IMG/VR virus record: IMGVR_UViG_3300025869_002060
Location: 164,349 to 228,348 of that record
Reading direction: 5' to 3' (one strand)
DNA length: 64,000 bases
Position numbers and translations under genes: made by a program. The notes under the pieces were generated by a model. That model saw only the letters and a list, made by a program, of their open reading frames with translations. It was not told the origin of the DNA and did no database searches. Below, one piece after another: positions 788 through 39,973 of this stretch. How positions within the stretch are numbered: position 1 is the first letter of the stretch; every line of letters begins with the position of its first letter.

Positions 788-1417
788 ATGGACGACGAAG
801 CACTTATTAAATCTGTCAGGGTTACTGATAGGTCTGACAGCGATTTTATGGTGGGTAGAGAGATTGAACATACTCCAGCCTACAATATGCAAACTTTGTT
901 TTTGCCTAAAATATATCCAGTTAAATTTATTATGTCGGTTAAACCAAAACATTGTACACACCTTTACTTTGGTGCAAACAAAGGTTTTCCAGAAACTGTT
1001 GACTCTAAAGAGTTCAAGATATGGGAACTGACTGTACTTGCTTTTCTTAAGAAAGGCTTCTGGTGTACACTAGATTTTCAACCACACCATTGGAACTTGG
1101 TTATGAATTCCAAACTTATCAACGAACCGCGTTTTATTCCGTTGGTGTCTTTGGAAGTACCCGGAATTGAACGTGCAAATTATAATACTTGTATCAAACT
1201 TGACGACACAGGTATTGAAGCAACCAATGGTGGTGTATGGGTGCATGAACTTCACAACTTACGTACACGTGAAACATTTACACGTTGGGACGAATACCGA
1301 GGTGATAAGCATCATAAATTTTTAACTCAAGGTGTTAATGATCGTAAACGTGTTTATGGATTATGCATGGAAGACGATGTAATTAAAAACAAATCTACAA
1401 AGGAAGATGAACAATGA
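788..1417 (+). CDS. Hypothetical protein heading the 7-deazaguanine-associated cluster
   Basis: 209-aa ORF whose TGA overlaps the ATG of the QueD-like gene (ATGA coupling); no family recognised. Confidence 0.75.
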   Translation: MDDEALIKSVRVTDRSDSDFMVGREIEHTPAYNMQTLFLPKIYPVKFIMSVKPKHCTHLYFGANKGFPETVDSKEFKIWELTVLAFLKKGFWCTLDFQPHHWNLVMNSKLINEPRFIPLVSLEVPGIERANYNTCIKLDDTGIEATNGGVWVHELHNLRTRETFTRWDEYRGDKHHKFLTQGVNDRKRVYGLCMEDDVIKNKSTKEDEQ

Positions 1418-1848
1418 GCGCCAATGATAACATAGTCAGCTTAACTGGAAAAGGTATGGATAAGTCCAGCGAAGTTATTGGATTAGCAAAAAGAATGATT
1501 TGGGTTACTTTTACCAAAGAAGGTATGCATTGTTATCCTGCCGCGGCAACTGATCCTAACCTTGCCACTGGTGATGAATATGATGTAAGTTTTCTTGCTC
1601 ACCCACACAGACATATCTTTCATTTTCGTGTAGCTATTGAAGTATTTCATGACGATAGAGATATTGAATTCATTCAGTTTAAACGTTGGTTAATGAAACT
1701 GTTTGAAGGCGAACTAAACGTAGACTATAAGTCATGTGAGATGATTGCAGATGACTTATACAGAGAAATTGCAACCATTTATCCAGGACGTGATGTTACT
1801 ATTCATGTGTCTGAAGATGGTGAAAATGGTTGCGAAATTCAGTATTAG
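1414..1848 (+). CDS. QueD/PTPS-like T-fold protein (second QueD paralog)
   Basis: His-rich HPHRHIFHFRV metal-binding stretch, DRDIEF, SCEMIA and VSEDGENG motifs resemble QueD/PTPS T-fold enzymes. Confidence 0.7.
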   Translation: MSANDNIVSLTGKGMDKSSEVIGLAKRMIWVTFTKEGMHCYPAAATDPNLATGDEYDVSFLAHPHRHIFHFRVAIEVFHDDRDIEFIQFKRWLMKLFEGELNVDYKSCEMIADDLYREIATIYPGRDVTIHVSEDGENGCEIQY

Positions 1849-1852
1849 ACAC

Positions 1853-1881
1853 TTGACAAACTTGCTAGAACATATTACAAT
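1853..1881 (+). promoter_or_regulatory. Sigma70-type promoter
   Basis: TTGACA-17nt-TACAAT. Confidence 0.7.
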
Positions 1882-1925
1882 AATGAACTTCAACTTACTT
1901 ACACTCCAAAAGAAGGAACAAAACA

Positions 1926-2165
1926 ATGAAGTCCGAAGTCACAGCAATATTCGACGATCTCGATCAATACCGTCAGTTTTGTGTGCAGTTTGGGAGGCCC
2001 TATAATGAACGGGATCTCTACAATAAGTCCAACAATCACTATGTTGATTTTTTGGCATTCAAGGAAGGCAAACGAATTCGTAACCACTGGAATAGCCAGT
2101 CCAAGAAGAAGCGACCGTTTGTGAAAAAGAGCAATTATAAAATGGCCAAGAGGAAACATGCGTAA
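1926..2165 (+). CDS. Hypothetical basic protein
   Basis: 79-aa ORF downstream of a promoter, overlapping the next start. Confidence 0.7.
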   Translation: MKSEVTAIFDDLDQYRQFCVQFGRPYNERDLYNKSNNHYVDFLAFKEGKRIRNHWNSQSKKKRPFVKKSNYKMAKRKHA

Positions 2166-3339
2166 ATTATTCTATATGGGTTTAGAACCCTACGAAGGTC
2201 GATACACTTTACAACTTCAAGATTGGAGCACTGAAGTGTTCGACCGCCGGGGGATTGACTATGTTGTCGTTCCCGGAACTACAATAGATGACACTAAAGC
2301 AATTAGTGTTGGGCAAGTACTAGATGCACATGGTCGTTCATACTTTGGTATGAGTCAGTTGATGAACCTGGTACAGATGATGCGAAATGGAGAATGTACT
2401 GGTGAAGATGTTGTATTCTTTGAAGACATGTTTCAGCCTGGTATGGAATCATTACCTTATATCATGTGTCAGATACCAGAAGAGCAACGACCTAAGATTT
2501 TTCTACGTTGTTTAGCCCAGGCAATTGACCCAGATGACTTTGTTCATGTATGGGGTATGAGCAAGTGGATGTCATTGTACGAACAGATGTGCAACGAAAT
2601 TCCTAATGTTCATATTCTAGCAACCAATGAAGAGATGGTTGCACACATGAAGATTGCAAACTGGACTGCTCCAATTTATAACATCTCAGGTTTGAGTTTT
2701 GGTAAAGCAGAAGTTCAAAGACGTATTGATAACAAAATTAAACCGTGGACAGAACGTAGCGACAGAGTAGTATTTGCGGCTCGCTTTGACCAAGAGAAGC
2801 AACCAGACTTCTTTATGGATGTTATTGAAATGGTCAAAGAGAAAAGGCCTGATGTTGAGTTTGCAGTACTAAGTGGTGGTCCATTGCGTAGTAATAATGA
2901 AAAGTATTTGGATCGAGCACTTGCAATGCAGGCTGAAGGTAAACTTACAATACTGAAATACTTGCAAAAGAATGATTACTACTATACAGTAAATGATAGC
3001 AAAGTATTGTTTAATTGTGCATTGCAAGACTGGGTAAGCAATACTGTAAGTGAAGCAGATGCATTGGGTTGTAACGTGGTGTATCCTGCTTACAGAAGTT
3101 TTCCTGAAACGTTTGCAAATGATTATACACGTCTGTATACTCCGTGGAGCAAAGAAGATGCAGTAAGTAAAATCATGCAAGGTCTTTTGGAACCAAGTCC
3201 TAATATGGGTAAAATCAGTAACTGGACTGATGGTACTATTGATCGTATGATTGATATTATGGAAGGCAGTTACAAACACAATACTTGGTTACGAAGTGGT
3301 AACAGGTATCGTGATCATGTAGCGGAAGGGAAATACTAA
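2158..3339 (+). CDS. GT-B fold glycosyltransferase (GT4-like)
   Basis: C-terminal domain motifs VFAARFDQEKQP and NCALQDWVSNTVSEADALGCNVVYP. Confidence 0.8.
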   Translation: MRKLFYMGLEPYEGRYTLQLQDWSTEVFDRRGIDYVVVPGTTIDDTKAISVGQVLDAHGRSYFGMSQLMNLVQMMRNGECTGEDVVFFEDMFQPGMESLPYIMCQIPEEQRPKIFLRCLAQAIDPDDFVHVWGMSKWMSLYEQMCNEIPNVHILATNEEMVAHMKIANWTAPIYNISGLSFGKAEVQRRIDNKIKPWTERSDRVVFAARFDQEKQPDFFMDVIEMVKEKRPDVEFAVLSGGPLRSNNEKYLDRALAMQAEGKLTILKYLQKNDYYYTVNDSKVLFNCALQDWVSNTVSEADALGCNVVYPAYRSFPETFANDYTRLYTPWSKEDAVSKIMQGLLEPSPNMGKISNWTDGTIDRMIDIMEGSYKHNTWLRSGNRYRDHVAEGKY

Positions 3340-3340
3340 G

Positions 3341-4339
3341 ATGCCTGAAAACACCGTATTAATTACCGGCAGTGATGGCTACGTTGGTAGCCATGTTGCT
3401 AAAGCATTTAAAGATATCAGTTGGTATGTGTGCGGTTTAGATCGCACTGGTGCAAATGAAAATGCACGTTCATACTGTAACGAGTTTTTACGTGCTGATT
3501 ACGGTGAGAGTAAGGTCGTTGGAAAGTATATTGAAACTATCAAACCAGATGTTATTGTACATTGTGCTGGTACTAGTCTAGTAGGTCCAAGTGTTACAGA
3601 TCCGCATGCCTACTATCAGAACAATGTACTTGGTACAATCAATTTATTAGACAATATAATTAACGTACAAAAAGATAATTTACCTGTTGTGCTTTTTAGT
3701 AGTTCAGCAAGTGTTTATGGCAATCCCGAACAACTTCCAATCACAGAAGATAGCAAGATCAATCCTGTAAACCCATATGGTAATACAAAGTCAATAATTG
3801 AAACCATGCTCAAAGACTATGCTAGTGCATACGGATTGAACAGTGTATCATTTCGTTTCTTTAATGCCGCTGGTGCCAGTGAAGATCTTGGTCAAGTGTT
3901 TGGTGCTACTCATATTATTGCTCGCATACTTGAAGCCAAGTTACGCCAACGACAGTTTACTTTGTATGGTACAGATTATAAAACTGAAGATGGTACTTGT
4001 GTTAGAGATTATGTACACGTAAAAGATATTGCTCAGGCACACCTAAACGCCGTTACAAAATACACAGCCGTTGGTGCCAATGCATTTAATCTTGGCACTA
4101 GCAAAGGATTCAGTAACCAAGAGATTATTGATGCGGTGGTAGAACAAATTGGCGAATTCGAAGTAGAAAAAGGACCACGCAGAGAAGGTGATCCAGATAT
4201 GCTAATAGCCAGCAGTGATAAAGCAAAAACACAACTAGGTTGGGATCCAGTAAATAGTAACTTAGACACAATTATCAATGACGTATGGGCTTGGTATAAC
4301 GTACTACTAGAGAAACAAAAAGAGCAAGAACAGGCATGA
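3341..4339 (+). CDS. galE: UDP-glucose 4-epimerase
   Basis: TGSDGYVGSH Rossmann motif, FSSSASVYG, YGNTK (YxxxK), FRFFNAAGA, GTCVRDYVHV. Confidence 0.9.
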   Translation: MPENTVLITGSDGYVGSHVAKAFKDISWYVCGLDRTGANENARSYCNEFLRADYGESKVVGKYIETIKPDVIVHCAGTSLVGPSVTDPHAYYQNNVLGTINLLDNIINVQKDNLPVVLFSSSASVYGNPEQLPITEDSKINPVNPYGNTKSIIETMLKDYASAYGLNSVSFRFFNAAGASEDLGQVFGATHIIARILEAKLRQRQFTLYGTDYKTEDGTCVRDYVHVKDIAQAHLNAVTKYTAVGANAFNLGTSKGFSNQEIIDAVVEQIGEFEVEKGPRREGDPDMLIASSDKAKTQLGWDPVNSNLDTIINDVWAWYNVLLEKQKEQEQA

Positions 4340-4929
4340 GTTTTAGTCATATACAGGAGTTTGAGGAGCAATTAGCACTATATACTGGTGCCAAGTGGGC
4401 CGTAATGACAGACACCTGTACCAATGCATTAGAACTATGTTTTAGGTACGATGAAGTTAAAGAATGCCAGTTTAGTGCATATACCTACCTAAGCATTTAT
4501 CAGTTATTACATAGATTGGATATCTCTTATACACTTACAGAAGAAGTATGGAGAGGCCAATATCATTTTGAAAATACCCGTATTTGGGATAGTGCAAGAT
4601 TACTTAAAAAGAATATGTATCAACCAGGACAATTACAATGTTTAAGTTTTGGTTATGACAAACCCTTATATCTCGGTTGGGGTGGTGCGATCCTAACCGA
4701 CGACCCGGCGTTCTACAAACATACGATTCAGCAACGTTATGACGGGCGGAACCTCTCAGTTACTCCATGGGAAACAGAAATACTTCCACGTATTGCATTC
4801 CATATGAGACCTACCCCTGAGATTGCACTAGATGGACTAGAACGATTAAGGACCGGAGATATAAGTAAACTTCCACCAAAGGCCGCTGACGAATTATATC
4901 CAAATGGAAAAGATATAAAATGGAAATAA
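4336..4929 (+). CDS. Truncated DegT/DnrJ-like PLP-dependent protein
   Basis: FEEQLALYTGAKWAV, CTNAL, WDSA, SFGYDKPL (PLP lysine) and GGAILTDD; 197 aa versus about 370-400 aa for typical DegT proteins. Confidence 0.75.
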   Translation: MSFSHIQEFEEQLALYTGAKWAVMTDTCTNALELCFRYDEVKECQFSAYTYLSIYQLLHRLDISYTLTEEVWRGQYHFENTRIWDSARLLKKNMYQPGQLQCLSFGYDKPLYLGWGGAILTDDPAFYKHTIQQRYDGRNLSVTPWETEILPRIAFHMRPTPEIALDGLERLRTGDISKLPPKAADELYPNGKDIKWK

Positions 4930-4945
4930 AACCTAATATTACTAC

Positions 4946-4974
4946 TTGACAATAACTCTAAATAAAGGTATAAT
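4946..4974 (+). promoter_or_regulatory. Consensus sigma70 promoter upstream of the folE unit
   Basis: TTGACA-17nt-TATAAT. Confidence 0.85.
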
Positions 4975-4980
4975 AAGAAG

Positions 4981-5187
4981 ATGATAGACATTTATGCATT
5001 AATTATAGTATGTTCAATTGGACAACCATGTTACGAAGTAAGAGATAGAGTAGAAGAGTATACTACCATATCCGAATGTAAAAGTTCTATCGGACGATTA
5101 AAAAGGTTATATAATAGTACGATGGTTACCTGTCATAGAGGTAACATCTTAAGAGACAATCACGGACAACTACCAAAGTCCGCATAA
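4981..5187 (+). CDS. Small Cys-containing hypothetical protein
   Basis: 68-aa ORF with hydrophobic N-terminus and 4 Cys; ATG only 6 nt after the -10 box. Confidence 0.6.
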   Translation: MIDIYALIIVCSIGQPCYEVRDRVEEYTTISECKSSIGRLKRLYNSTMVTCHRGNILRDNHGQLPKSA

Positions 5188-5225
5188 TAAATGGCAATCC
5201 TCTGCCTTAACATCGGAGATTTTAA

Positions 5226-5924
5226 ATGAGTGAACTAATATCTAAAATTATCACAGATCGTGTAAAAGAATCAGGCGACCGCTACTGGGCTGGTGATAAT
5301 ATTTCTAAACATATCCATAACGAATACGAAAAACAAGATTTAATTAATGAAATTGCAGTAGCATTTGAAGATGTTCTTGATGCATTGGTTATTGATAGAT
5401 TCAATGACCCTAACAGTATGGATACTGCAAGACGTCTTGCTAAAATGTATATTAATGAAGTTATGAGTGGCAGGTACGACCCAATGCCTAAGGCAACAGC
5501 CTTTCCTAATCATGTAGATGATGGATACAAAGGTATGTTGGTTGTACGTTCAGAACTTAAAAGTATGTGTTCGCATCATCATCAACCAGTAAGCGGTGTT
5601 GCATACATTGGTATTATTGCCGCAGAAACACTAATTGGTCTTAGCAAGTATACACGTATTGCTCAATGGTGTGCAAGGCGAGGTACACTACAAGAAGAAC
5701 TTAATAATGTTATTGCTAACGAGATTCAAAAAGCAACAGGTAGTCCTAACATAGGTGTTTACGTTCAGGCCACTCATGGTTGTTGCGAAAACAGAGGCAT
5801 TATGGCACATAGTAGTTTAACACAAACAACTGTACTTAGAGGTGCATTTAGTGATGATCCAGGCACTAAGAAAGAGTTTATGGATAACATTAAACTGCAA
5901 CAAGAGTTTGCTTGTGGAAAATAA
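5226..5924 (+). CDS. folE: GTP cyclohydrolase I
   Basis: TARRLAKMY, SMCSHHHQP, GLSKYTRI, LQEEL, HGCCENRG; GGAG RBS. Confidence 0.95.
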   Translation: MSELISKIITDRVKESGDRYWAGDNISKHIHNEYEKQDLINEIAVAFEDVLDALVIDRFNDPNSMDTARRLAKMYINEVMSGRYDPMPKATAFPNHVDDGYKGMLVVRSELKSMCSHHHQPVSGVAYIGIIAAETLIGLSKYTRIAQWCARRGTLQEELNNVIANEIQKATGSPNIGVYVQATHGCCENRGIMAHSSLTQTTVLRGAFSDDPGTKKEFMDNIKLQQEFACGK

Positions 5925-6385
5925 AGAGCACAGTTTTTGGTGCTAGAAAGGAAGTTATGTTTTTAAAGTTACTTGATCGATTAGGTCGAAAAAGAATTGT
6001 TTACGATAGGTTGGATGACGAGCCTTATCTTGAACGTTACTATGTGTTTATTAAAGAAAGAAAACACTTTCCTTTCAATATTTTCCTACACAAATTTCTT
6101 AAAAGCGATCCAGATGATTTACACGATCATCCTTGGGGATATGCTACACTTATTCTTAAAGGTGGATATTGGGAGCATACCCCCGACGGAAAGTTTTGGA
6201 GAGGTCCCGGACATTTTAGAATGTGCAAGTCCAACAATACACACAGAATTGAACTAGACCCTGATGTTCAAGCCTGGACATTGTTTATGCCCGGACCACA
6301 AAGGAAAGACTGGGGATTTATCAAAGACGGTAAATGGATTCAACACGAAAAATATCTTTCATCTAGAAAAATGTTAAAGGAATGA
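5912..6385 (+). CDS. Cupin-fold protein
   Basis: LHDHPW...ILKGGYWE and later HRIEL cupin metal motifs. Confidence 0.7.
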   Translation: MWKIKSTVFGARKEVMFLKLLDRLGRKRIVYDRLDDEPYLERYYVFIKERKHFPFNIFLHKFLKSDPDDLHDHPWGYATLILKGGYWEHTPDGKFWRGPGHFRMCKSNNTHRIELDPDVQAWTLFMPGPQRKDWGFIKDGKWIQHEKYLSSRKMLKE

Positions 6386-6906
6386 CAATGAATAAACTCT
6401 ATATTGACGATACTCAGATTAAAAATGCATGTCATTCCATTGTAACAAAAATGTATAGAGATAACTTTAAACCTAAATACATTGTAGGAATTACACGCGG
6501 CGGGCTAGTTCCAGCTTTATACCTAAGTCATATGACTGGTATTACAATGCATACACTAGATGTTCGTTTACGTGATGGTGATGAACAAGAATCAAATCTA
6601 TGGATGGCCGAAGATGCATTTGGTTATCCTAATCAAGACAGTGGCGGACAAGGAAAAAATATTTTAATTGTAGATGATATAAATGACACTGGTGCAACGT
6701 TCAACTGGATTAAACAAGATTGGCCCTCAGGGTGCTTACCTAACGATCTTCGTTGGAATGAAGTATGGCATAACAATGTACGTTTTGCAAGTATTATTGA
6801 CAATATGGGTAGCAACTTCAAGGTTGACTATTCAGAAATTGAGATTAATAAATCCGAGGAGGATGTGTGGGTAGTATTTCCGTGGGAAGAACCTTTAAGG
6901 GTCTAG
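6382..6906 (+). CDS. Type I phosphoribosyltransferase (xanthine/guanine PRT-like)
   Basis: VGITRGGLVPA, PRPP-binding ILIVDDINDTGAT, C-terminal WVVFPWE. Confidence 0.9.
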   Translation: MTMNKLYIDDTQIKNACHSIVTKMYRDNFKPKYIVGITRGGLVPALYLSHMTGITMHTLDVRLRDGDEQESNLWMAEDAFGYPNQDSGGQGKNILIVDDINDTGATFNWIKQDWPSGCLPNDLRWNEVWHNNVRFASIIDNMGSNFKVDYSEIEINKSEEDVWVVFPWEEPLRV

Positions 6907-7109
6907 AAGGAAAATACAATGTGCATTATAACTTTGATGTGCGAGCAACTACCGATGGTGGAATTCCAGGTACGACAATTAACTGGTGTAAAGAAAATAT
7001 AACTAACGAATGGGGTTGGTACTTTGATCAAGACAATAAAGATATCGGGTACTGTACTTTTATTGATGAAAAAGACGCAATTTATTTTGCATTAAGGTAC
7101 TCAAAATAA
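6867..7109 (+). CDS. Hypothetical protein
   Basis: 80-aa ORF; W...W...F.DEKDA.YFAL pattern resembles 24101..24397. Confidence 0.6.
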   Translation: MGSISVGRTFKGLEGKYNVHYNFDVRATTDGGIPGTTINWCKENITNEWGWYFDQDNKDIGYCTFIDEKDAIYFALRYSK

Positions 7110-7678
7110 TGCTTGGATTTTATCCAAATTTTAAAATCACATGCAATGTAGATTGGACTGAACTGTCATTACGTGTCACTGACACGGCTATAAATTATGT
7201 TCACACAAACAAATACAAAGAAAATATATTATACGAAAGTGTAAACAGTATCGTAGCAAGTCTACCTACAGGTGGTTGGATAAGCAAGAGTGGTCCAAGT
7301 TTTGATTTCTTTGTAATGGGCGGAATACCCGAAACCGAAATATTAGATAATTGGTTTAAAAAACAATTTCCAAATTTAACATTTACCCCAGCAACAATTT
7401 GTTGGAGTAGTAAAAATGTTCCGTTGCACAGAGACAACATAAAGAACGGACAATCAAGTTTAGTATATCCTATATCAAATAATAGTGGATACGGAACTGT
7501 ATATAGCAACGATGCCAAGTTCACTTATGGTACCGAAAAACATAAACCTGTTGTAATCAATATAACTGTTGATCACGAGGTAGTAATTACTGAACCAAGA
7601 GTCTGGTTCAGTATTCATATGCAAGAACCAATTAAAATGGTTAAAGAAGTACTTGACAATTATGCAAATAACGTATAG
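7109..7678 (+). CDS. Putative 2OG-Fe(II) oxygenase-like protein
   Basis: PLHRD (HxD) plus distal His (VDHEV) in a beta-rich fold pattern. Confidence 0.5.
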   Translation: MLGFYPNFKITCNVDWTELSLRVTDTAINYVHTNKYKENILYESVNSIVASLPTGGWISKSGPSFDFFVMGGIPETEILDNWFKKQFPNLTFTPATICWSSKNVPLHRDNIKNGQSSLVYPISNNSGYGTVYSNDAKFTYGTEKHKPVVINITVDHEVVITEPRVWFSIHMQEPIKMVKEVLDNYANNV

Positions 7679-7706
7679 TATTAAATATTATAAAGGTGAT
7701 TTCTAA

Positions 7707-8198
7707 ATGACATACTACAGTACAAAAACATACGGACACAACATAGGACTAAGTGCAGTGTTCCGTCAACCAAATGCAGATCACTCACATTGCCATTTGT
7801 TACATGGTTATAGTTTGCAGTTTAAATTTACATTTGGTTGTTCTGAATTAGATAAAAAAAACTGGGCCGTTGACTTTGGTGGATTAAAACCACTCAAAGC
7901 ATGGCTTGAAGATAGCTTTGATCATAAGACAGCAATTGATATTGCTGATCCTCATAAACAAGAATTTTATGATTTGCAGGACAAAGACTTATGTGAAGTA
8001 AGAGAATTTGACGGGGTTGGTGCAGAGAAGTTTGCAGAACATGCATGGCGCTTTGCAGACAAACTCGTCAAAGAAATGACAAATGGACGTTGTTGGTGTG
8101 AGAGTTGTGAGTGTGCAGAACACGGGGCAAATTCTGCTATTTATTCTCCGTATGTCGTACAAAAAACCTCGTTCAAGGAGAACCATAATGAACAATAA
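7707..8198 (+). CDS. queD: 6-carboxy-5,6,7,8-tetrahydropterin synthase
   Basis: HCHLLHGY, WAVDFGGLK, FDHK, AEKFAEH, CAEHGANSA motifs. Confidence 0.9.
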   Translation: MTYYSTKTYGHNIGLSAVFRQPNADHSHCHLLHGYSLQFKFTFGCSELDKKNWAVDFGGLKPLKAWLEDSFDHKTAIDIADPHKQEFYDLQDKDLCEVREFDGVGAEKFAEHAWRFADKLVKEMTNGRCWCESCECAEHGANSAIYSPYVVQKTSFKENHNEQ

Positions 8199-8394
8199 AC
8201 TACTATTGGCATTGCAGGCAAGGTATCAAGCACAAAAGGCAGAAGGCCTTGCTAATATCGATGTCTACATGCAAAATCCAGCAGGTATTGGCGAGCATCC
8301 AGACATCACTGGTGCTATTGCTGAACAAATTGCTAAGATTGCAGAAGCAGACGATGGTTTGCTTGTGTTAGAAGAAAACTTCAGTGACAAGTAA
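8188..8394 (+). CDS. Small hypothetical phage protein
   Basis: GGAG RBS before ATG 8188 (the track start at 8083 is too far upstream); NPAGIGEHPDI motif. Confidence 0.75.
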   Translation: MNNKLLLALQARYQAQKAEGLANIDVYMQNPAGIGEHPDITGAIAEQIAKIAEADDGLLVLEENFSDK

Positions 8395-8512
8395 TACTGA
8401 CAAACAGTGGATATGCCCGGTTTGTGGGCATATCCATTATGGCGAAACTCACCCTGAGGTTGATTGCCCTATCTGTGCATTGCCTGGTGAAGAATACATT
8501 GAACAAGAATAG
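8384..8512 (+). CDS. Rubredoxin-like / zinc-ribbon micro-protein (42 aa, not in ORF track)
   Basis: Manual translation from GTG: MTSNTDKQWICPVCGHIHYGETHPEVDCPICALPGEEYIEQE; two CxxC knuckles. Confidence 0.8.
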   Translation: MTSNTDKQWICPVCGHIHYGETHPEVDCPICALPGEEYIEQE

Positions 8513-8523
8513 AAAGGCACACT

Positions 8524-9396
8524 ATGAACTGGCGTTATAGCGAAGAATTTTATAGTATACAAGGTGAAGGCAAATTTGTAGGAGTACCTAGTGTATTTTT
8601 ACGTATGTTTGGTTGCAACTTTCGTTGTAAGAACTTTGGTAGATCCAAAGACGAAACCTTTGCTAAAAACGAACCAAATCCTGAAGTGCAAGAAGTTATT
8701 GATAATATTGATCAATACGAGAATTTTGGAGATTTACCAATTGTGCATACTGGTTGCGATACGTATGCAAGTATCTATCCGCAGTTTAAACGTTTTATGA
8801 AAAATCTTAACACTGACGAGGTAGCTGAACGTTTACTAGCATTAACACCAAATGGTTCATGGACCATGCCCAATGGGCAAGATATTCATCTAATTATAAC
8901 TGGCGGAGAGCCATTGCTTGGTTGGCAAAAAAATTATGTTGAATTATTTAATCATCCGAAAATGAAAGATTTAAAAAATGTTACAATCGAAACAAATGGT
9001 ACTCAAGCTCTTAGACCGGAGTTTGTTGACTTTATCACACATCAAGAAAGAATATGTATTACTTTCTCGTGTAGCCCAAAGTTATCCGTTTCGGGAGAGT
9101 CTTGGAGTGATGCTATTAACCCTGACATTGTTAGCACTTACTATAATCTTCCTAATAGTGATTTGTATCTTAAGTTTGTGGTTAACGATGATGTGGATGT
9201 GGACGAAGTTAGCAGAGCTACTGAAGAGTATCGTGCGGCCGGGGTTGAGTGTCCAGTATATACTATGCCGCTTGGCGGACGGTATGACGAGTATAAAGCA
9301 ACGACTAAAAGGGTCGCAGAACTCGCAATGCAAAAAGGGTGGAGATATACACCCAGACTACACGTTGATATCTTCGGAAATGCATGGGGCACGTAA
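8524..9396 (+). CDS. queE: 7-carboxy-7-deazaguanine synthase (radical SAM)
   Basis: EFYSIQGEG, FLRMFGCNFRC...GCDT, ITGGEPLL, IETNGT, SPKL, PRLHVDIFG. Confidence 0.92.
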   Translation: MNWRYSEEFYSIQGEGKFVGVPSVFLRMFGCNFRCKNFGRSKDETFAKNEPNPEVQEVIDNIDQYENFGDLPIVHTGCDTYASIYPQFKRFMKNLNTDEVAERLLALTPNGSWTMPNGQDIHLIITGGEPLLGWQKNYVELFNHPKMKDLKNVTIETNGTQALRPEFVDFITHQERICITFSCSPKLSVSGESWSDAINPDIVSTYYNLPNSDLYLKFVVNDDVDVDEVSRATEEYRAAGVECPVYTMPLGGRYDEYKATTKRVAELAMQKGWRYTPRLHVDIFGNAWGT

Positions 9397-9469
9397 GAAA
9401 GAAACGCCATTAGAAAAGGCTATGAAAGCACCCATTGACATTGACAAACTGAGGAACCGAGGATTTTGA
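9380..9469 (+). CDS. Possible 29-aa micro-ORF
   Basis: MHGARKKETPLEKAMKAPIDIDKLRNRGF bridges the queE end and the next start with overlaps at both ends. Confidence 0.35.
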   Translation: MHGARKKETPLEKAMKAPIDIDKLRNRGF

Positions 9470-10137
9470 CCAAAGTAGTACACACCCAAATAGTATGTGG
9501 AATGCCACACCTACTATCAAATTTTGATTTGAACCTAAATCATCTTAGCAAAGAACTTGGAGACATACACTGGCATTTTATGTATGATCGTCCCGGTGAT
9601 GCAACAGTAAAAGGTGAGCGTGTTTATCAAAGTTTTCTACGTCTTGATTTTGACATTGTAGATACATTTAAAGAAGATGATGTACTTCATATTGTTACAA
9701 CAGGAGAACAAGTTGACGATGCTATCTTTAAGACTGTACATACATTTGGTAAAAATAAAATTACCTTGTACAGTATTGGGATAATTATTGATAAGGGTTC
9801 ACTTGTTAAAGCTATAACTGCAAAAAATAGAGACTTAGAGTTTTGGGCCAATCACAGAAATTTTAAACGTGTTACACGTTCAAAAGAAATATTAGCCTCA
9901 TTTAATACGTATCCTAGTATTGATTTTAATTGTGCTGGAATACTATATTGTGCAAACTATGTTAGGTACATATACCAGTTTGCAGATATACTAAAGAAAC
10001 AAGTTACTGTTAAAAATATGTACTTCTTTGGTAACATTAAACCATATCAAGTACTTGATATTGTTCAGGACGAACACGGCATACATATTATTAGTGAAGA
10101 CCGATTAATAGCAACTTGTATATGCGAACTAGAATAG
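9466..10137 (+). CDS. Double-hotdog protein resembling the Pnap_2097/LnmK-related biosynthetic family
   Basis: GMPHL...LSKELGDIHW, ERVYQSFL, DFNCAGILY, YFFGNI motifs recalled from that family. Confidence 0.55.
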   Translation: MTKVVHTQIVCGMPHLLSNFDLNLNHLSKELGDIHWHFMYDRPGDATVKGERVYQSFLRLDFDIVDTFKEDDVLHIVTTGEQVDDAIFKTVHTFGKNKITLYSIGIIIDKGSLVKAITAKNRDLEFWANHRNFKRVTRSKEILASFNTYPSIDFNCAGILYCANYVRYIYQFADILKKQVTVKNMYFFGNIKPYQVLDIVQDEHGIHIISEDRLIATCICELE

Positions 10138-25825: not shown

Positions 25826-26328
25826 TATCAGCATTACTAGCAGTAGATTCAAGAGGAGGAATGGGATATAAAGGCACATTGCCTTGGTATGTTCCAGAAG
25901 ACTTGCAAAAGTTTAAAGACCTCACTATGAATAATGTTGTAGTAATGGGAAGAAAGACTTGGGACGATAAGAAGATGCCCAAGCCATTGGTAAACCGAAC
26001 TTGTTACGTAGTAACTTCTCGCCCTGATACACTAGGTGATCATGCTTTACCAATTAACGGAACTAACCTTGAGAAGTCCATATTAGATTTAGAATTCAAA
26101 CATCAAGATAAAAAAATATATGTTATTGGTGGACCTAAAATAATCATGCAGGTTCATAATATATTAGATCAAATACACATCACTCAAATTCAAGGTCAAT
26201 TTAAAACTGATGTTAGAATCAATGTTGACAATTTAGTAACTCGTGATTTTATTCCAAGAAGCAGTTCATCAGGGCCAGACCAAAAAGCGACATTTATACG
26301 TTATGAAAAATTATTTAAACGCCATTAA
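25822..26328 (+). CDS. folA: Dihydrofolate reductase
   Basis: GMGYKGTLPW..PEDLQKFK, VVMGRKTW, PLVNR, VIGG. Confidence 0.93.
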   Translation: MISALLAVDSRGGMGYKGTLPWYVPEDLQKFKDLTMNNVVVMGRKTWDDKKMPKPLVNRTCYVVTSRPDTLGDHALPINGTNLEKSILDLEFKHQDKKIYVIGGPKIIMQVHNILDQIHITQIQGQFKTDVRINVDNLVTRDFIPRSSSSGPDQKATFIRYEKLFKRH

Positions 26329-27133
26329 AGAAGTACTAATAAACGGACAAGAACGCAGAGATCGCACCGGCGTTGGTACCATTGGTTTATTTGGTATGCA
26401 ACAACGTTATGATCTAAACAAAGGTTTCCCAGCAGTAACTACAAAGAAACTTGCATGGAAAAGTGTAGTTAGCGAGTTGCTCTGGTTCTTAGAAGGCAGT
26501 GGCGACGAACGTAGACTAGCCGAAATATTACACAAAACAAGAGATGAAAACAAGAAAACTATCTGGTCTCCTAATGCAGAAGCAGACTACTGGTTACCTA
26601 ATGCGGAATACAAAGGCGACCTTGGTAGAGTGTATGGTGTACAATGGCGTGAATGGGGAACAGATCAAATTGAAAAACTAATTGAAGGTATTAAACAAGA
26701 TCCATTTTCACGTAGACATATACTAAGTGCATGGAATGTAGGCGAGCTAGATCTAATGGCATTACCACCATGTCATATTATGGCTCAGTTTTATGTTAGC
26801 ACAGACAACAAATTAAGTTGTCAAATGTACCAACGAAGTTGCGACATGTTTCTTGGAGTACCATTTAACATTGCAAGTTATAGTCTACTCACACATATGA
26901 TTGCCCAAGTATGCAATCTAAAAGTAGGCGAGTTTGTGCATACATTAGGCGATGCACATATATATCTTAACCATGTCAATCAAGTTAAAGAACAACTTGC
27001 AAGAGAACCGTTGCCTTTACCTACACTTTGGCTAAATCCAGAAAAAAGACATATTGATCATTTTACAATGGATGATATACGTTTGCAGAATTATCAAAGT
27101 CACGAAACAATTAAAGCGGAGATGGCAGTATGA
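26303..27133 (+). CDS. thyA: Thymidylate synthase
   Basis: DRTGVGT, TTKKL, ELLWFL, ALPPCH, YQRSCDMFLGVPFN, DAHIYLNH; start refined to MKNYLN. Confidence 0.95.
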   Translation: MKNYLNAIKEVLINGQERRDRTGVGTIGLFGMQQRYDLNKGFPAVTTKKLAWKSVVSELLWFLEGSGDERRLAEILHKTRDENKKTIWSPNAEADYWLPNAEYKGDLGRVYGVQWREWGTDQIEKLIEGIKQDPFSRRHILSAWNVGELDLMALPPCHIMAQFYVSTDNKLSCQMYQRSCDMFLGVPFNIASYSLLTHMIAQVCNLKVGEFVHTLGDAHIYLNHVNQVKEQLAREPLPLPTLWLNPEKRHIDHFTMDDIRLQNYQSHETIKAEMAV

Positions 27134-28137
27134 CCAGAGCATTAGTAACAGGCGGATTAGGACTTATTGGTCATAATATAGTACAAGAACTTGTTAGTCA
27201 AAATATCCCTACAGCCATTGTTGACAACCTAACAAATTATAACAATGCAATTAGTATGAAAGAATTAGGATATCTATTTGGTGAAAGACTTAAACTAGTA
27301 CACGACCTGCCACCTAATCTTGTTAGTTTAAATTACCTACACAAAGACATTGAAACAAACGATTTTGAATCTTGTTTTAACTTTGTAAAACCAACAGTTT
27401 TGTATCATTTGGCTTGTCCTCCTAGACAAAAGATTGTTGGACTAAGTCCACAGTTCTGCGGTAATACAATGATTGGCGGATTGCTTAATACTTTAAAACA
27501 CTGTGTCAAATACAATGTAGAAAGAATTGTTTATATTAGTTCTAGTATGGTATATGGAGACTTTGAAGATAATGTTACTGAAGATGCAGTACTAAATCCA
27601 CAAGGTGAATACGGTATTTTAAAACTTGCTGGTGAACAATTGGTCAAAGACTATCACAGAAAGTATGGACTAAATTATACTATCATTAGACCAAGTGCAG
27701 TTTATGGTCCGCTTGATTTAAGTGATAGAGTTATTAGTAAGTTTCTGTTAACTGCAATGGGAGGCGGAGAGCTTACTGTCAATGGTGAACACGAAACACT
27801 TGATTTTACATATGTTGGTGATGCCGCACAAGGTATTACGAGTGCCGGATTAAGCGAAGAAGCAGAAAATAAAACCTATAACATTACCAAGAGCCACAGT
27901 AAGACTTTATTAGCGGCCGCTGAACTAGCAGTTGAGATTGCTGGAAAAGGTACTATTAAGATCAATGAAAAAGATGATGATTTTCCAAGTCGTGGAGCAT
28001 TAGACATTACCGCGGCAAAACAAGACTTTGGGTTTGATCCCCAAGTTGATATTGAAGAAGGATTTGGCTTATATCATGAGTGGCTTTCAAATTCCGTTTA
28101 CTGGAACAAAGCGGCAATATCAAAGTTTGCGAAGTGA
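27130..28137 (+). CDS. NAD-dependent NDP-sugar epimerase/dehydratase
   Basis: TGGLGLIG, ISSSMVYG, YGILK (YxxxK), RPSAVYGP, LDFTYVGD. Confidence 0.9.
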   Translation: MTRALVTGGLGLIGHNIVQELVSQNIPTAIVDNLTNYNNAISMKELGYLFGERLKLVHDLPPNLVSLNYLHKDIETNDFESCFNFVKPTVLYHLACPPRQKIVGLSPQFCGNTMIGGLLNTLKHCVKYNVERIVYISSSMVYGDFEDNVTEDAVLNPQGEYGILKLAGEQLVKDYHRKYGLNYTIIRPSAVYGPLDLSDRVISKFLLTAMGGGELTVNGEHETLDFTYVGDAAQGITSAGLSEEAENKTYNITKSHSKTLLAAAELAVEIAGKGTIKINEKDDDFPSRGALDITAAKQDFGFDPQVDIEEGFGLYHEWLSNSVYWNKAAISKFAK

Positions 28138-29239
28138 GCTTCTTGATACTGCTGATAAAGTTTGGTCTACAGGACAACACCTAAACGGATACTACACAGA
28201 GACTTTTGAAAGTGTAATTGCTGAACGATGCAATCGCAAATATGCTATTGCTGTTAACAGCGGAACACAGGCGTTGATATTCGCTATTAGATCTCTCAAG
28301 CTACCCTTTCGTAGCAAGATAGCAATACCAGGTTTAAGTTTTGTTGCAACTCTTAACAGTATAATTGAAACTGGTTATATCCCACATTTAATTGATGTTG
28401 ACAAAGATGGTCTAATAGATCTGACAACCGATGAAGATATTGAAAAAACCTATGATGCTTTGGTATATGTTAACCTATATGGTAACATGGTTGATTATAG
28501 TAAAATTAAATTAATTACAGAATTTTTTGGACAAATTACAAAGTTACCTGTTATTGAAGATGCCGCTCAGAGTTTTGGATCCACGTTTCAAGGTAAACCA
28601 AGTGGTAGCTTTGGAGACATTAGTATATTAAGTTTTGATCCAATGAAAAACTTTAACAGTTATGGCAGTGGCGGAATGGTATTAACTGATGACATGGCTA
28701 TTGCATCAAGTGTTAGAGACCTTGCTACCAATGGCAAAGAAAATAACTATTCTCACAGTGGAACCAACAGTCGTATGAGCGAACTGGATTGTGCTTGTAT
28801 GTTAGTGAAGTTGGGCCACTTTGATAAATGGCAAGCACGCCGAAAGAAGATTGCAACTTACTGGAATGATGAATTTAACAATCATATTAGAACACTTGTT
28901 GTACATGATGATGTTGAATCAAGTTATCACAAATATCCAATATTTGTTAATCCAAATGTAACCAGTAGAAATAGATTAAAGTATAACCTACAAGAGTTAG
29001 GAATTGCAACAAAAGTACACTACGATAAAGCTCTTGGCAACTATCAATCCTTTATTGAATGTGCTTATAGTATTTACGATGCCGACCTTAGAGCCGGAAT
29101 AGAACACCAAGCCACACAAACCAACATGGCTGTAACTATAGCAAATAACCAATTGAGTTTACCTATATATCCTGAACTAACTGATGCTGAAGTTGAATTT
29201 ATTGCAGAACAAGTTAAAGATAATGCATCCAAGTACTAG
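28076..29239 (+). CDS. DegT/DnrJ/EryC1/StrS NDP-sugar aminotransferase
   Basis: AVNSGTQAL, EDAAQSFG, SFDPMKNF..YGSGG, NSRMSEL, LSLPIYP; start refined to MSGFQIP. Confidence 0.92.
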   Translation: MSGFQIPFTGTKRQYQSLRSELLDTADKVWSTGQHLNGYYTETFESVIAERCNRKYAIAVNSGTQALIFAIRSLKLPFRSKIAIPGLSFVATLNSIIETGYIPHLIDVDKDGLIDLTTDEDIEKTYDALVYVNLYGNMVDYSKIKLITEFFGQITKLPVIEDAAQSFGSTFQGKPSGSFGDISILSFDPMKNFNSYGSGGMVLTDDMAIASSVRDLATNGKENNYSHSGTNSRMSELDCACMLVKLGHFDKWQARRKKIATYWNDEFNNHIRTLVVHDDVESSYHKYPIFVNPNVTSRNRLKYNLQELGIATKVHYDKALGNYQSFIECAYSIYDADLRAGIEHQATQTNMAVTIANNQLSLPIYPELTDAEVEFIAEQVKDNASKY

Positions 29240-37626: not shown

Positions 37627-38677
37627 AACCTGGTTTTAACCTTTCAATTTGTACGTCATAATAATCCTTGTCTGTCCAGCAATAATCAAAATCACATGAA
37701 GCCTCAAGTGTTTCAATTTTTACAATGTCTAAGTGTTCGCCAATGATCTCCCACACTGTTTCAGGATTGTCTGTACCAAAACTACCTACTAGATCAACTT
37801 GTCCAACTGAATGATATCCATAGTTGTATTGTGTGTCATTGTGATTAAAACCATTACGCTCTAACCAATCTGCATATTCATCCATTCGTTGCTTGTGCCA
37901 CGGATATTCACCAGCATAGGTAATATCACGTGACCATTCAATGTCAAACTCGCCACTGTAGTAACGCAAATGAGTAATCTCTTCACACATTGCGTCTGTT
38001 AAATCAGGTGCGCCTTCATCAACGAACACTTCATATAATGTTTTTCCTACTTGAGTCCAGTGTTGGTAAACAGTACCAAAGGTACGATCATATCTTTCCT
38101 TGTTGAATGTCCGCTTATGCTCGTCGGGATAATCAAATCTAGGAGCATTTAAAAATGTTGTGATCTGAGACGGACGCATCCACTGCGGTGCCTCAATTTG
38201 TTTCTTCTGGCTCAGCATTAATGATTCTGCTTCGTGACACAAATTGTTTAACTGTCTAATAGCAAACTTAGTTTCGTGATTTGCTTTTTTATACCAGTCA
38301 CTCAATCCCCATGCACTACCTTGTAGTACTTCAAAATGATTATGCAATCTGTTCATAATATCCTGATTTGGGTTCATGCCATCTCTCAATGTTTTTGGTG
38401 TAAATATTTCTCTTATTATATACTCCTTGTTAAAAAAATCATTGATAGTATTTTTGACCCACTGTAACTCTTTACATATGAAGTTAATATCTCTAGCAGT
38501 ATTAGGAAAACCCAAGAATAAAAAGTTCTTTTCTAAGTAGGAATCATTTATTAATAATCCATTTAATGCACCTAGCCAGTTACGTCCCATTATAGTTTGC
38601 TCAACGTCAATATGAAAATCAACTGTTTTACTTTTGTTAACTGGATTTCTTAATACTACTTTAACTTCTCGTGTCAT
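37604..38677 (-). CDS. Hypothetical protein downstream of the radical SAM array
   Basis: About 357 aa, ATGA-coupled to radical SAM gene 38674; start refined to MTREVKV. Confidence 0.75.
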   Translation of the reverse strand: MTREVKVVLRNPVNKSKTVDFHIDVEQTIMGRNWLGALNGLLINDSYLEKNFLFLGFPNTARDINFICKELQWVKNTINDFFNKEYIIREIFTPKTLRDGMNPNQDIMNRLHNHFEVLQGSAWGLSDWYKKANHETKFAIRQLNNLCHEAESLMLSQKKQIEAPQWMRPSQITTFLNAPRFDYPDEHKRTFNKERYDRTFGTVYQHWTQVGKTLYEVFVDEGAPDLTDAMCEEITHLRYYSGEFDIEWSRDITYAGEYPWHKQRMDEYADWLERNGFNHNDTQYNYGYHSVGQVDLVGSFGTDNPETVWEIIGEHLDIVKIETLEASCDFDYCWTDKDYYDVQIERLKPGYDYSSRG

Positions 38678-39972: not shown

Positions 39973-39973
39973 A

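Follow-up and report, generated by a model that had tools for sequence, protein, structure and literature searches.

A phage-only glycosyltransferase family linked to DpdL-type 7-deazaguanine DNA modification clusters

A glycosyltransferase (GT) of a phage-only family, and the epimerase GalE that would supply its sugar, are encoded in hundreds of phage genomes inside the gene set which replaces guanine in phage DNA with 7-deazaguanine, an arrangement pointing to an undescribed, sugar-decorated form of this modification. The reading is tentative, the acceptor of the enzyme being unproven.

Organization of the cluster

The window, i.e. the whole 64,000-nucleotide stretch analyzed, derives from an uncultured marine jumbo phage, of which 228 kb (about 65% of the genome) were available. 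ORFs were translated with genetic code table 11 only. The GT gene starts at an ATG preceded by AAGAGGAAAC, ends at the TAA at 3337-3339, and is separated by one base (3340) from the ATG of galE, whose TGA in turn overlaps the ATG of a compact DegT-like gene (ATGA, 4336-4339), so that the three form one translationally coupled run. The features of the region, all on the plus strand, are the following.

788-1417 (+), u209, conserved alpha/beta protein of unknown fold, directly upstream of DpdL; present in 66 of 80 GT loci, with homologues detected by HMM beside the GT in phage ACP17 and in two further loci (L089 and L091); no Pfam, PHROG or NCBIfam hit.
1414-1848 (+), DpdL, a QueD-like T-fold protein, proposed 7-carboxy-7-deazaguanine (CDG) decarboxylase; matches phrog_17812.
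1926-2165 (+), 79-aa ORF of unknown function overlapping the GT start by 8 nt; homologue at the same position in 22 of 80 loci; no family hit.
2158-3339 (+), GT-B glycosyltransferase, GT4-like retaining type, 393 aa.
3341-4339 (+), GalE, UDP-hexose 4-epimerase, 332 aa.
4336-4929 (+), compact DegT-like protein, 197 aa, about half the normal length, with a partial DegT_DnrJ_EryC1 match.
5226-5924 (+), FolE, GTP cyclohydrolase I; PF01227 E 9e-38; NF006824 142 bits, below its cut-off of 202; 60% identical to the FolE of phage Phosso.
5912-6385 (+), cupin-like protein (phrog_4786, 'cysteine dioxygenase', E 7e-38); present in only 8 of 80 GT loci.
6382-6906 (+), phosphoribosyltransferase (PRTase), xanthine/guanine PRT-like; PF00156 E 1e-11; NF006613 xanthine PRT E 8.5e-14; present in 59 of 80 loci and in phages BUCT-ZZ01 and PA5oct.
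7109-7678 (+), 189-aa protein of unknown function; no family hit; found only in the closest relatives.
7707-8198 (+), QueD-like 6-carboxytetrahydropterin synthase; PF01242 E 4e-12; phrog_2389 E 2e-38; 53% identical to the BUCT-ZZ01 QueD; the motif reads CxxxHGY, not CxxxHGH.
8524-9396 (+), QueE, 7-carboxy-7-deazaguanine synthase (radical SAM); phrog_2076 E 2e-51; five QueE NCBIfam models match, all below cut-off.
9466-10137 (+), LnmK-like double hot-dog protein (acyltransferase/decarboxylase family) of unknown role; TIGR04098 E 2e-13, below cut-off; present in only 4 of 80 loci.

The observation made in the original prediction, that a GT-B enzyme and a full GalE lie 1 nt apart between a QueD-like gene and folE, is confirmed, with the additions that the QueD-like gene is dpdL and that the 79-aa and DegT-like ORFs also reside in the interval. 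The large glycan island placed 23 kb away is only partly that: a sugar dehydratase-like SDR and a full DegT were confirmed at 27-29 kb, while four radical SAM/SPASM genes were found at 38.7-44.4 kb. A near-identity DNA search of window positions 50-64 kb against the phage database returned no match.

The protein at 1414-1848 carries LAHPHRHIF, which fits the DpdL signature LxxxHRHxF (PMC10516641) replacing CxxxHGH of QueD, and the same motif is found in 12 neighbours of GT homologues. In tblastn searches it hits the DpdL locus of Cellulophaga phage phiST (32% identity, E 6e-7), the DpdL of ACP17 (53% identity, E 4e-31) and, phiST aside, a total of 26 other phage records. The setting is that of DpdL also in that FolE, QueD, QueE and a DpdA-like protein are encoded, and no QueC was found by Pfam search of the genome. 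Decarboxylation of CDG, not assayed here, is only proposed in the literature, and expression of dpdL with dpdA from phiST and ACP17 gave no dDG in E. coli (PMC10516641).

The DpdA part of the setting rests on a divergent 489-aa protein encoded about 1.8 kb upstream of the window (G000:C1:161043-162512, in coordinates of the phage genome). No Pfam TGT (PF01702) match was found in the genome at E<=1, and no Pfam hit for the protein itself. In a 12-member family alignment GDSGGFQ, HFLGTS and SFDCAS are conserved, hhalign to DpdA3 aligned these motifs with a probability of 61% and E 7.8e-5, and an Atlas feature search hit a TGT cluster at 0.93, but the family profile found nothing useful in PDB; these data speak for the assignment only moderately, and leave membership in a recognized DpdA subfamily undecided. 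The protein belongs to a more divergent subfamily shared with PA5oct and Phosso, the DpdA3 type of ACP17, BUDD and BUCT-ZZ01 being absent from this genome by tblastn. The lack of Pfam TGT and QueC hits had first suggested a DpdA-less, nucleotide-level pathway like that of tubercidin or toyocamycin, rejected as the sole route once the TGT motifs of the 489-aa protein were seen.

GalE scores 307.4 bits against the TIGR01179 equivalog model (cut-off 262.3). Its best solved relatives are UDP-glucose 4-epimerases (PDB 8wxk, E 2.7e-70), and the regions GSDGYVG, SSSASVYG and PYGNTK, corresponding to the NAD-binding glycine motif and to the catalytic Ser and Tyr-x3-Lys, match those of 8wxk and 4twr. 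The gatekeeper position was not rigorously aligned to characterized enzymes, and no choice is made between UDP-Glc/Gal and UDP-GlcNAc/GalNAc as substrates. The DegT-like ORF is not a pseudogene fragment, since 15 distinct homologues of 193-225 aa keep the same short length, the Asp of IWDSAR and the Lys of SFGxxKPL. For u209, an AF2 model (pLDDT 84) gave no clear fold match (best PDB Z 6.8), and neither the Atlas search nor a profile search of PDB was informative.

Distribution of the glycosyltransferase family

A word search with the GT returned only near-identical relatives, while a search of cluster representatives defined a distinct family of 872 representatives at E<=1e-3, very abundant in ocean metagenomes. 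A scan of 185,579 species genomes, made with 10 closer members, gave 6 hits only, all in phage-synteny contigs binned into MAGs. The placement of the GT is not chance: in every context examined, down to 22% identity, it sits in a DpdL-type deazaguanine cluster, and cultured carriers include phages of Pseudomonas, Acidovorax, Xanthomonas, Sinorhizobium and Synechococcus. All 15 phage-database records with a GT homologue are among the 27 with a DpdL homologue, and the GT lies 0-1 genes from DpdL in BUCT-ZZ01, Phosso, ACP17, the PA5oct group and BUDD/X1. Six distant metagenomic members (30-38% identity) all have a DpdL-type (PTPS-like) ORF close to the GT, and the longer contigs also carry FolE, QueD or QueE. 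Conversely, 26 of 43 well-flanked IMG/VR loci selected by DpdL, about 60%, carry the GT, which is missing in phiST, whose DNA is plain dDG. In the 228 kb analyzed the GT is the only Glycos_transf_1 gene.

GalE directly follows the GT in 73 of 80 related IMG/VR loci, and only 2 of the 7 exceptions are not contig ends. GalE also follows a GT only 22.6% identical (locus L148), as well as the GT in DpdA3-type clusters (loci L137, L138 and L141). An epimerase-like hit occurs in 9 of 40 GT-positive and in 1 of 40 GT-negative DpdL loci (Fisher p 0.014), the single GT-negative hit being only 22% identical. Within the lineage median identity is 73% for the GT, against 41-44% for GalE, FolE and the DpdA-like protein. 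Repeated xenologous replacement, considered to explain the low identity of GalE, is not supported, as GalE and GT divergence correlate (r 0.79), hence the two were co-inherited vertically. The C-terminal 300 residues of a 655-aa GT homologue (P0159), examined as a possibly informative fusion, are charged and of low complexity, with no family or homology.

Predicted structure and sequence relationships

The GT matches Pfam PF00534 (37.2 bits, cut-off 26.4) and PF13692 (33.9 bits, cut-off 27), the only Pfam matches at E<=0.01, and has no PHROG hit. The protein is predicted to fold as a two-Rossmann GT-B enzyme with an interdomain cleft (AF2 pLDDT 95.4, pTM 0.93), and matches about 30 GT4, GT5 and GT20 structures with Z of 20-27 over 310-345 residues. 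The donor-binding residues R209 and K214 (R-x4-K) are invariant, D291 and E299 (D/E-x7-E) at least 90% conserved, in 75 family members. The acceptor-side N-domain is as conserved as the donor domain (22 vs. 19 near-invariant columns), as would fit a common acceptor across hosts. Sugar transfer from an NDP-sugar was not assayed.

Structural comparison with T4 AGT and BGT versus LPS GT4 enzymes had been set out in advance as a way to probe a DNA acceptor, and does not separate DNA from small-molecule acceptors. T4 alpha-glucosyltransferase is a clear structural relative (1y6f, Z 20.8, rmsd 4.0 over 321 residues) but ranks 26th, below many small-molecule GT4 enzymes (Z up to 26.6); PDB matches above it are 6kih (Z 26.6), BshA (25.8), PimA (24.3) and the BH4 glucosyltransferase (23.7), and T4 BGT is not in the top 50. 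Membership in the T4 AGT or BGT sequence families was not found, and neither the GT sequence (E<=1) nor the family profile retrieved useful PDB hits. The protein is acidic (pI 5.1; family median 5.8), not what is expected of a DNA-binding enzyme. Use of hmC as substrate, suggested in the original prediction, is unlikely, as only one thymidylate synthase-family gene, a true ThyA (TIGR03284, 358 bits), was found in the 228 kb, and no hmC or hmU route was detected there, which speaks against either base as the acceptor.

Possible roles of the GT-GalE pair

The interpretation given in the original prediction, of a GT acting on DNA with a donor supplied by GalE, is partly supported: the pair belongs functionally with the deazaguanine genes and not with a general glycan island, yet a DNA acceptor has not been demonstrated. 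The favored, though tentative, explanation is that GT and GalE are the sugar-adding arm of a DpdL-type module. What family matches provide is that FolE, QueD and QueE make CDG, that DpdL is the proposed decarboxylase yielding 7-deazaguanine, and that the DpdA-like transglycosylase would exchange guanine in phage DNA for the deazapurine. The remainder is inference: the GT would transfer a UDP-Gal-derived hexose onto the deazaguanine moiety after insertion of the base into DNA, a second layer of hypermodification analogous to glucosylation of hydroxymethylcytosine in T4; GalE would convert host UDP-Glc (or UDP-GlcNAc) into the 4-epimer used by the GT; the PRTase would recycle the excised guanine; u209 may create or present the acceptor group. 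In line with this view, PA5oct, which carries the family, has DNA resistant to restriction enzymes whose sites contain G, its modified base being not yet identified (PMC12191111). Against it, 7-deazaguanine has no obvious hydroxyl, an O-glycoside would need another, unidentified step, and N- or C-glycosylation by a retaining GT4 enzyme would be unusual. Binding among the proteins of the cluster is not claimed, and complexes were not modelled.

Action on a small molecule of the same pathway is less likely. Free 7-deazaguanine or CDG (for example at N9), or a deazaguanine nucleotide made by the PRTase, could be glycosylated before or instead of insertion into DNA, to give a glycosylated base inserted by DpdA, or a soluble deazapurine glycoside. 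The association with DpdL, FolE, QueD and QueE fits this reading as well as the DNA reading, top structural matches act on small acceptors (BshA, MshA, sucrose-phosphate synthase, LmbT and SenB), the protein is acidic, and a PRTase is conserved in the cluster. Near-invariant acidic and aromatic residues of the N-domain (D56, D90, D124, D127, E142, Y12, Y16, Y101, W137) would suit, by inference, a 2-amino-4-oxo heterocycle. However, no known DpdA or TGT accepts a glycosylated base, known phage GT-B enzymes encoded beside base-modification genes act on DNA (established for T4), and no physiological use for a free deazapurine glycoside is evident.

Synthesis of a pterin glycoside, an auxiliary metabolite unrelated to DNA, is quite unlikely. 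On this reading FolE plus a PTPS-family enzyme (QueD or DpdL) would make a tetrahydropterin, to be glycosylated by the GT as by the cyanobacterial UDP-glucose:tetrahydrobiopterin glucosyltransferase. FolE and two PTPS-family proteins (QueD and DpdL) are encoded around the GT, the UDP-glucose:tetrahydrobiopterin alpha-glucosyltransferase (BGluT) of Synechococcus PCC 7942 is a strong structural match (5zer, Z 23.7, 310 residues), and BUCT-ZZ01 infects that same cyanobacterium. Yet the match ranks ninth and is no better than to a dozen other GT4 enzymes, no sequence relation was detected even with the family profile, and GT-bearing clusters on contigs long enough also carry QueE and a DpdA-type gene, which have no role in pterin glycosides. 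Other carriers infect Pseudomonas, Xanthomonas, Acidovorax and Sinorhizobium. No sepiapterin-reductase-like gene was noted in the cluster, though no dedicated search was made.

Modification of host envelope or other glycans (LPS, capsule or teichoic acid-like), for example for superinfection exclusion, with a coincidental placement of the pair, is improbable. In its favor are generic GT4 membership, public annotations as 'involved in cell wall biosynthesis', weak NCBIfam similarities to TviE, SdgA and PglH (E 1e-3 to 5e-3), and the additional sugar-nucleotide module at 27-29 kb. In contrast, the family is absent from cellular genomes in the scan done, the acceptor domain is conserved across phages of unrelated hosts with different envelopes, the GT is never seen outside DpdL clusters, and no membrane-association or lipid-carrier genes lie next to it.

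Similarly improbable is that the GT glycosylates a protein (a host defence factor, DpdA or a virion protein), or serves as a structural or scaffolding partner of DpdL and DpdA without transferring sugar to the base. Gene junctions with DpdL are tight and often overlapping, and for the failure of dpdL plus dpdA in E. coli 'other unknown enzymes' were suspected (PMC10516641), the GT sitting between the two genes in ACP17. But phiST makes dDG without this GT, conservation of donor-binding residues and co-occurrence of GalE make real sugar transfer likely, and there is no evidence for a protein acceptor.

Comparison with known systems

T4 alpha- and beta-glucosyltransferases are likewise phage-encoded GT-B enzymes using a UDP-hexose in a genome which replaces a canonical base, and act as a second protective layer. 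They differ in sequence family, and no hydroxymethylase was found in the 228 kb of this phage analyzed, the modified base here being a deazapurine without a hydroxymethyl handle. The dDG system of phiST (Cui et al. 2023, PMC10516641) shares FolE, QueD, QueE and DpdL, the lack of QueC and, if the moderate assignment of the 489-aa protein holds, a TGT-like transglycosylase nearby, but has no GT, GalE, u209 or PRTase, and its transglycosylase is of a different subfamily. BGluT has a GT4-like retaining fold and acts on a GTP-derived 2-amino-4-oxo heterocycle made via GTP cyclohydrolase I and a PTPS enzyme, but is a cellular enzyme, not linked to QueE or DpdA. Galactosyl- and mannosyl-queuosine of animal tRNA carry the only known sugars attached to a 7-deazaguanine derivative in a nucleic acid, one of them galactose from UDP-Gal; there the sugar is on the cyclopentenediol side chain of Q, whereas no QueC, QueF, QueA or QueG was detected here, and the nucleic acid would be DNA.

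The association of the GT is not described in PMC10516641, and literature searches on glycosyltransferases linked to 7-deazaguanine DNA, and on DpdL, DpdA3, ACP17 and PA5oct, found no such link, the MMBR review PMC10966956 not being covered. A further possibility, more doubtful than the explanation favored above, is that virion DNA of these phages, and of cultured carriers such as PA5oct, ACP17, BUDD/X1, Phosso and BUCT-ZZ01, contains a hexosylated 7-deazaguanine, made by a dedicated phage-only GT4-like family with galactose supplied by the co-encoded GalE. The sugar may be N- or C-linked to the deazapurine core, or O-linked after an unknown hydroxylation involving u209, and this would be the first sugar-bearing purine analogue in DNA.

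Conclusions

Eight 7-deazaguanine derivatives are known in viral DNA, and none carries a sugar (PMC10516641). DNA glycosylation is known only on hydroxymethyl-pyrimidines. A GT family welded to the DpdL branch suggests a further, unseen layer of guanine hypermodification, which would bear on phage resistance to restriction enzymes and to modification-dependent nucleases and glycosylases (PA5oct, for example, is targeted by END nucleases; PMC12191111), and on the sequencing and cloning behaviour of such DNA. It may explain why reconstitution of dDG from dpdL and dpdA alone failed for ACP17, though not for phiST, which lacks the GT. The cultured carriers make the hypothesis directly testable. 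The family also offers a new enzyme for tagging deazapurines and, even if the acceptor turns out to be a small molecule, the strict gene linkage defines a new step of deazapurine metabolism.

Gene organization of the GT-GalE region

The 64 kb analyzed are the last part of a 228,348-base IMG/VR virus record, estimated to be 65% complete and hence to come from a jumbo phage of roughly 350 kb. The G+C content is about 37%. A tight run of genes, all on the + strand, occupies positions 788-10137, and includes the following:

788-1417 (+), u209, conserved alpha/beta protein with no family or fold match (best PDB Z 6.8)
1414-1848 (+), DpdL
2158-3339 (+), GT-B glycosyltransferase (GT), 393 aa
3341-4339 (+), GalE, 332 aa
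4336-4929 (+), short DegT/PseC-like protein, 197 aa
5226-5924 (+), FolE
between FolE and QueD (+), a cupin and a xanthine/guanine-type phosphoribosyltransferase (PRTase)
7707-8198 (+), QueD
8524-9396 (+), QueE
downstream of QueE (+), LnmK-like hot-dog protein

The GT ORF is preceded by a Shine-Dalgarno-like AAGAGGAAAC and ends at 3339, one base before the start of the GalE ORF, the TGA of which overlaps the ATG of the DegT-like ORF. The first protein matches Pfam Glycos_transf_1 above the gathering score. The second passes the GalE equivalog model TIGR01179 (307 bits vs. 262), and aligns over its whole length with solved UDP-glucose 4-epimerases, NAD motif and Ser/YxxxK regions being in place. 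The arrangement described in the original prediction, a glycosyltransferase and a GalE separated by 1 nt within the deazaguanine cluster, is confirmed. The DegT/PseC-like protein has about half the usual length, but is conserved as a short form (193-225 aa) in 15 distinct homologues, which keep the Asp (IWDSAR) and the PLP lysine (SFGxxKPL). Translationally coupled to GalE, it may be a minimal PLP enzyme acting on the same sugar.

The gene at 1414-1848, regarded as QueD-like in the original prediction, carries the motif LAHPHRHIF, which fits LxxxHRHxF, the signature used to define DpdL (Cui et al. 2023, PMC10516641). By tblastn the protein hits the DpdL locus of phage phiST and 26 other phage records. 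In Vibrio phage Bakedbeans (gp176, locus L096:9245-10396) DpdL makes up the C-terminal 130 residues of a 383-aa protein, the N-terminal 250 residues of which have no family hit. The QueD homologue at 7707-8198 reads CxxxHGY where QueD has CxxxHGH, and the third zinc-ligand position therefore differs.

Neither QueC nor TGT was detected in the genome by Pfam searches. A 489-aa protein encoded about 1.8 kb upstream of the window (161043-162512 of the record; L007:11044-12513) is however conserved with the cluster and features the motifs GDSGGFQ, HFLGTS and SFDCAS. It aligns by hhalign, with the motifs in register, with the DpdA3 proteins of phages ACP17, BUDD and BUCT-ZZ01 (probability 61%, E 8e-5), and its features resemble those of a TGT-annotated Atlas cluster (0.93). 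The protein is taken, with moderate confidence, as a divergent DpdA-like transglycosylase. It is shared with PA5oct (540 aa, directly upstream of the GT), Phosso and Vibrio phage 2.275.O, and looks like an unnamed DpdA subfamily.

Other genes were noticed in the window. A small SET-domain protein (383-700, +, 105 aa; PF00856 E 2e-9) recurs just upstream of the GT in 13 related loci. A true thymidylate synthase, followed by a 4,6-dehydratase-like SDR and a full-length DegT/PseC-like aminotransferase, is found at 26243-29239 (+), and represents a second sugar-nucleotide module, separate from the GT-GalE pair. A very large ORF, which was not examined, runs towards the window end (58679-63805, -, 1708 aa or more). 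Four tandem paralogous radical SAM proteins of 407-451 aa, substrate unknown, are encoded at 38674-44356 (-), three of the four having also an N-terminal SPASM domain.

Distribution of the GT family

In the phage database, GT homologues were found by tblastn in 15 records, all of which are among the 27 records with DpdL. A 16th, the Sinorhizobium jumbo phage Phosso, was found by blastn and blastp. In each, the GT lies inside the deazaguanine cluster, in the order shown below.

Gene order in GT-carrying clusters of the phage database
BUCT-ZZ01: DpdA3, DpdL, GT
Phosso: DpdL, GT (overlapping by 4 nt), FolE
ACP17: FolE, u209-like protein, DpdA3, GT, DpdL, QueE
PA5oct group: 540-aa DpdA-like protein, GT, DpdL, ..., QueE
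BUDD and X1: GT, DpdA3, DpdL, QueE

An exhaustive search of 1.84 billion cluster representatives gave 872 relatives at E<=1e-3 and 201 at E<=1e-30, indicating a small, separate family, and not the bulk of GT4. The encoding contigs were retrieved for six distant members (30-38% identity). In each of them a small DpdL-type (PTPS-like) ORF lies close to the GT, and carries the LxxxHRHxF motif wherever DNA sequence was obtained. The longer contigs also carry QueD, QueE or FolE.

In the reverse analysis, 80 diverse IMG/VR loci were selected starting from DpdL. Of the 43 loci with at least 4 kb on both sides, 26 carry the GT and 17 do not. The GT-less state matches that of phages phiST, RHph_I1_18, Bakedbeans and Ahp1. 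The DNA of phiST naturally has about 100% dDG ([M+H]+ 267.109). The GT is therefore an optional, but very frequent, add-on to the DpdL branch, and was never seen elsewhere. u209 accompanies the GT in the lineage of this phage, and also in ACP17 and in loci L089 and L091, but is not found in GT-less DpdL phages.

One genome for each of 185,579 prokaryote species was scanned. Six hits were found, all in MAG contigs with the same phage synteny, and the family looks phage-only. E-values from the locus scans refer to candidate sets only. Contigs with this synteny (L100-L105) are binned into MAGs labelled Rickettsiales, Phycisphaerae, Chitinophagales, Haliscomenobacter and Chloroflexi. They are probably phage contigs mis-binned or co-binned, and are no guide to the host.

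Association of GT and GalE

In 80 IMG/VR loci (L008-L087) with a GT 71-100% identical to the one analyzed, the usual order is PolB, (methyltransferase-like), u242, DpdA-like, u209, DpdL, GT, GalE, (short DegT-like), FolE, PRTase, ..., QueE. GalE directly follows the GT in 73 loci, and five of the seven exceptions are contig ends. Loci within the marine lineage are not phylogenetically independent, and the weight of the association rests on about ten independent cluster architectures. Median pairwise identity is 73% for the GT, but 41-44% for GalE, FolE and the DpdA-like protein. GT and GalE divergence correlate (r 0.79), and the pair has therefore been co-inherited over a long span, the GT being under unusually strong constraint. 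Similarly, the GT of the Synechococcus phage BUCT-ZZ01 is 70.5% identical, though its other cluster proteins are 28-53% identical, which suggests either extreme constraint on the GT or its transfer.

The pair recurs in other settings. GalE directly follows a GT only 22.6% identical to the one analyzed (locus L148). In DpdA3-type clusters (L137, L138, L141) the order is QueE, PRTase, FolE, a second GT, DpdA3, DpdL, GT, GalE, QueD, and in rearranged clusters (L118, L167) the order is DpdA-like, GT, u209, DpdL, GalE. Among DpdL-anchored loci, an epimerase-like hit occurs in 9 of 40 with the GT and in 1 of 40 without (Fisher p 0.014), the single hit in the latter being only 22% identical. These data support the inference, made in the original prediction, that GalE feeds the GT, though Gal and GalNAc were not discriminated as the sugar supplied. 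The second GT-B protein (447 aa, Glyco_trans_1_4; L001:9010-10353 in BUCT-ZZ01, near 4282 in L137 and L138) is a different one, and sits beside DpdA3 in BUCT-ZZ01-type clusters. Those phages therefore have two glycosyltransferases in the deazaguanine cluster, which recalls the two GTs of T4 or a disaccharide.

Predicted structure of the GT

The AlphaFold2 model, obtained with 75 family members as the alignment, has a pLDDT of 95.4. The predicted fold is GT-B, of the retaining GT4/GT5 kind. A structural comparison with T4 AGT/BGT versus LPS GT4 enzymes had been suggested at the outset as a check on a DNA-directed activity. The fold matches include sucrose-phosphate synthase (Z 26.6), BshA (Z 25.8), PimA (Z 24.3), glycogen synthase (Z 24.0), tetrahydrobiopterin alpha-glucosyltransferase (Z 23.7), and T4 alpha-glucosyltransferase bound to DNA (Z 20.8). 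The GT is not a member of the T4 AGT/BGT families, either by sequence or by fold ranking, and structure does not tell DNA from small molecules as acceptors. The protein is acidic (pI 5.1). Synthesis of a pterin glycoside, as the tetrahydrobiopterin enzyme may bring to mind, is regarded as unlikely, and glycosylation of the free base or of a nucleotide of the same pathway as doubtful, though less so. Among predicted viral structures, only the ACP17 homologue and one unnamed protein stand out (TM 0.75-0.85), other viral GTs being near 0.5-0.64.

Residues R209-x4-K214 and D291-x7-E299 are conserved. In GT4 and GT5 enzymes these bind the diphosphate and ribose of the donor, so the protein is probably an active NDP-sugar transferase. 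The N-terminal (acceptor) domain is as conserved as the donor domain (22 vs. 19 near-invariant columns), and many acidic and aromatic residues are near-invariant there. This argues for a single acceptor common to phages of cyanobacteria, pseudomonads, xanthomonads and rhizobia, that is, something made by the phage itself. A role on host glycans, and a protein-directed or scaffolding role, are both considered very unlikely.

Putative role in DNA modification

The gene inventory and the linkages come from sequence and family matches, whereas the steps of the pathway are inferred, all functional statements resting on homology, fold and gene linkage. In this view, GTP would be converted to CDG by FolE, QueD and QueE, DpdL would give 7-deazaguanine, the DpdA-like enzyme would swap it for guanine in phage DNA, and the PRTase would salvage the released guanine. 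The GT, fed with the 4-epimer made by GalE, would put a hexose on the deazaguanine moiety, most likely in DNA, as in T4 hmC glucosylation. This is the favoured reading, but a tentative one. The weak point is chemical, because dDG offers no hydroxyl. Either a further step creates one, or the linkage is N- or C-glycosidic. Candidates for a further step, which would prepare the acceptor, are u209 or the occasional cupin. A hydroxymethyl-pyrimidine acceptor is unlikely, because the only ThyA-family gene in the 228 kb of this incomplete genome is a genuine thymidylate synthase.

The original interpretation is thus supported in part: the GalE link gains support, the context is stronger than could be known from the sequence alone, and a DNA acceptor is plausible but unproven. 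The base-synthesis part belongs to the DpdL/dDG kind described for phiST. The GT, GalE, u209 and the divergent DpdA-like protein are not mentioned in that paper, nor in any other paper found in the literature searches made. PA5oct, a carrier of the GT family, has DNA resistant to several restriction enzymes whose sites contain G, and is inferred to have a modified G, the chemistry of which has not been determined (PMC12191111). The system resembles T4 AGT/BGT in logic, and would differ from what is known in combining the deazaguanine and glycosylation themes of phage DNA hypermodification, which is directly testable on cultured phages. The added sugar would provide the phage with a second shield against nucleases that have learnt to recognise deazaguanine.
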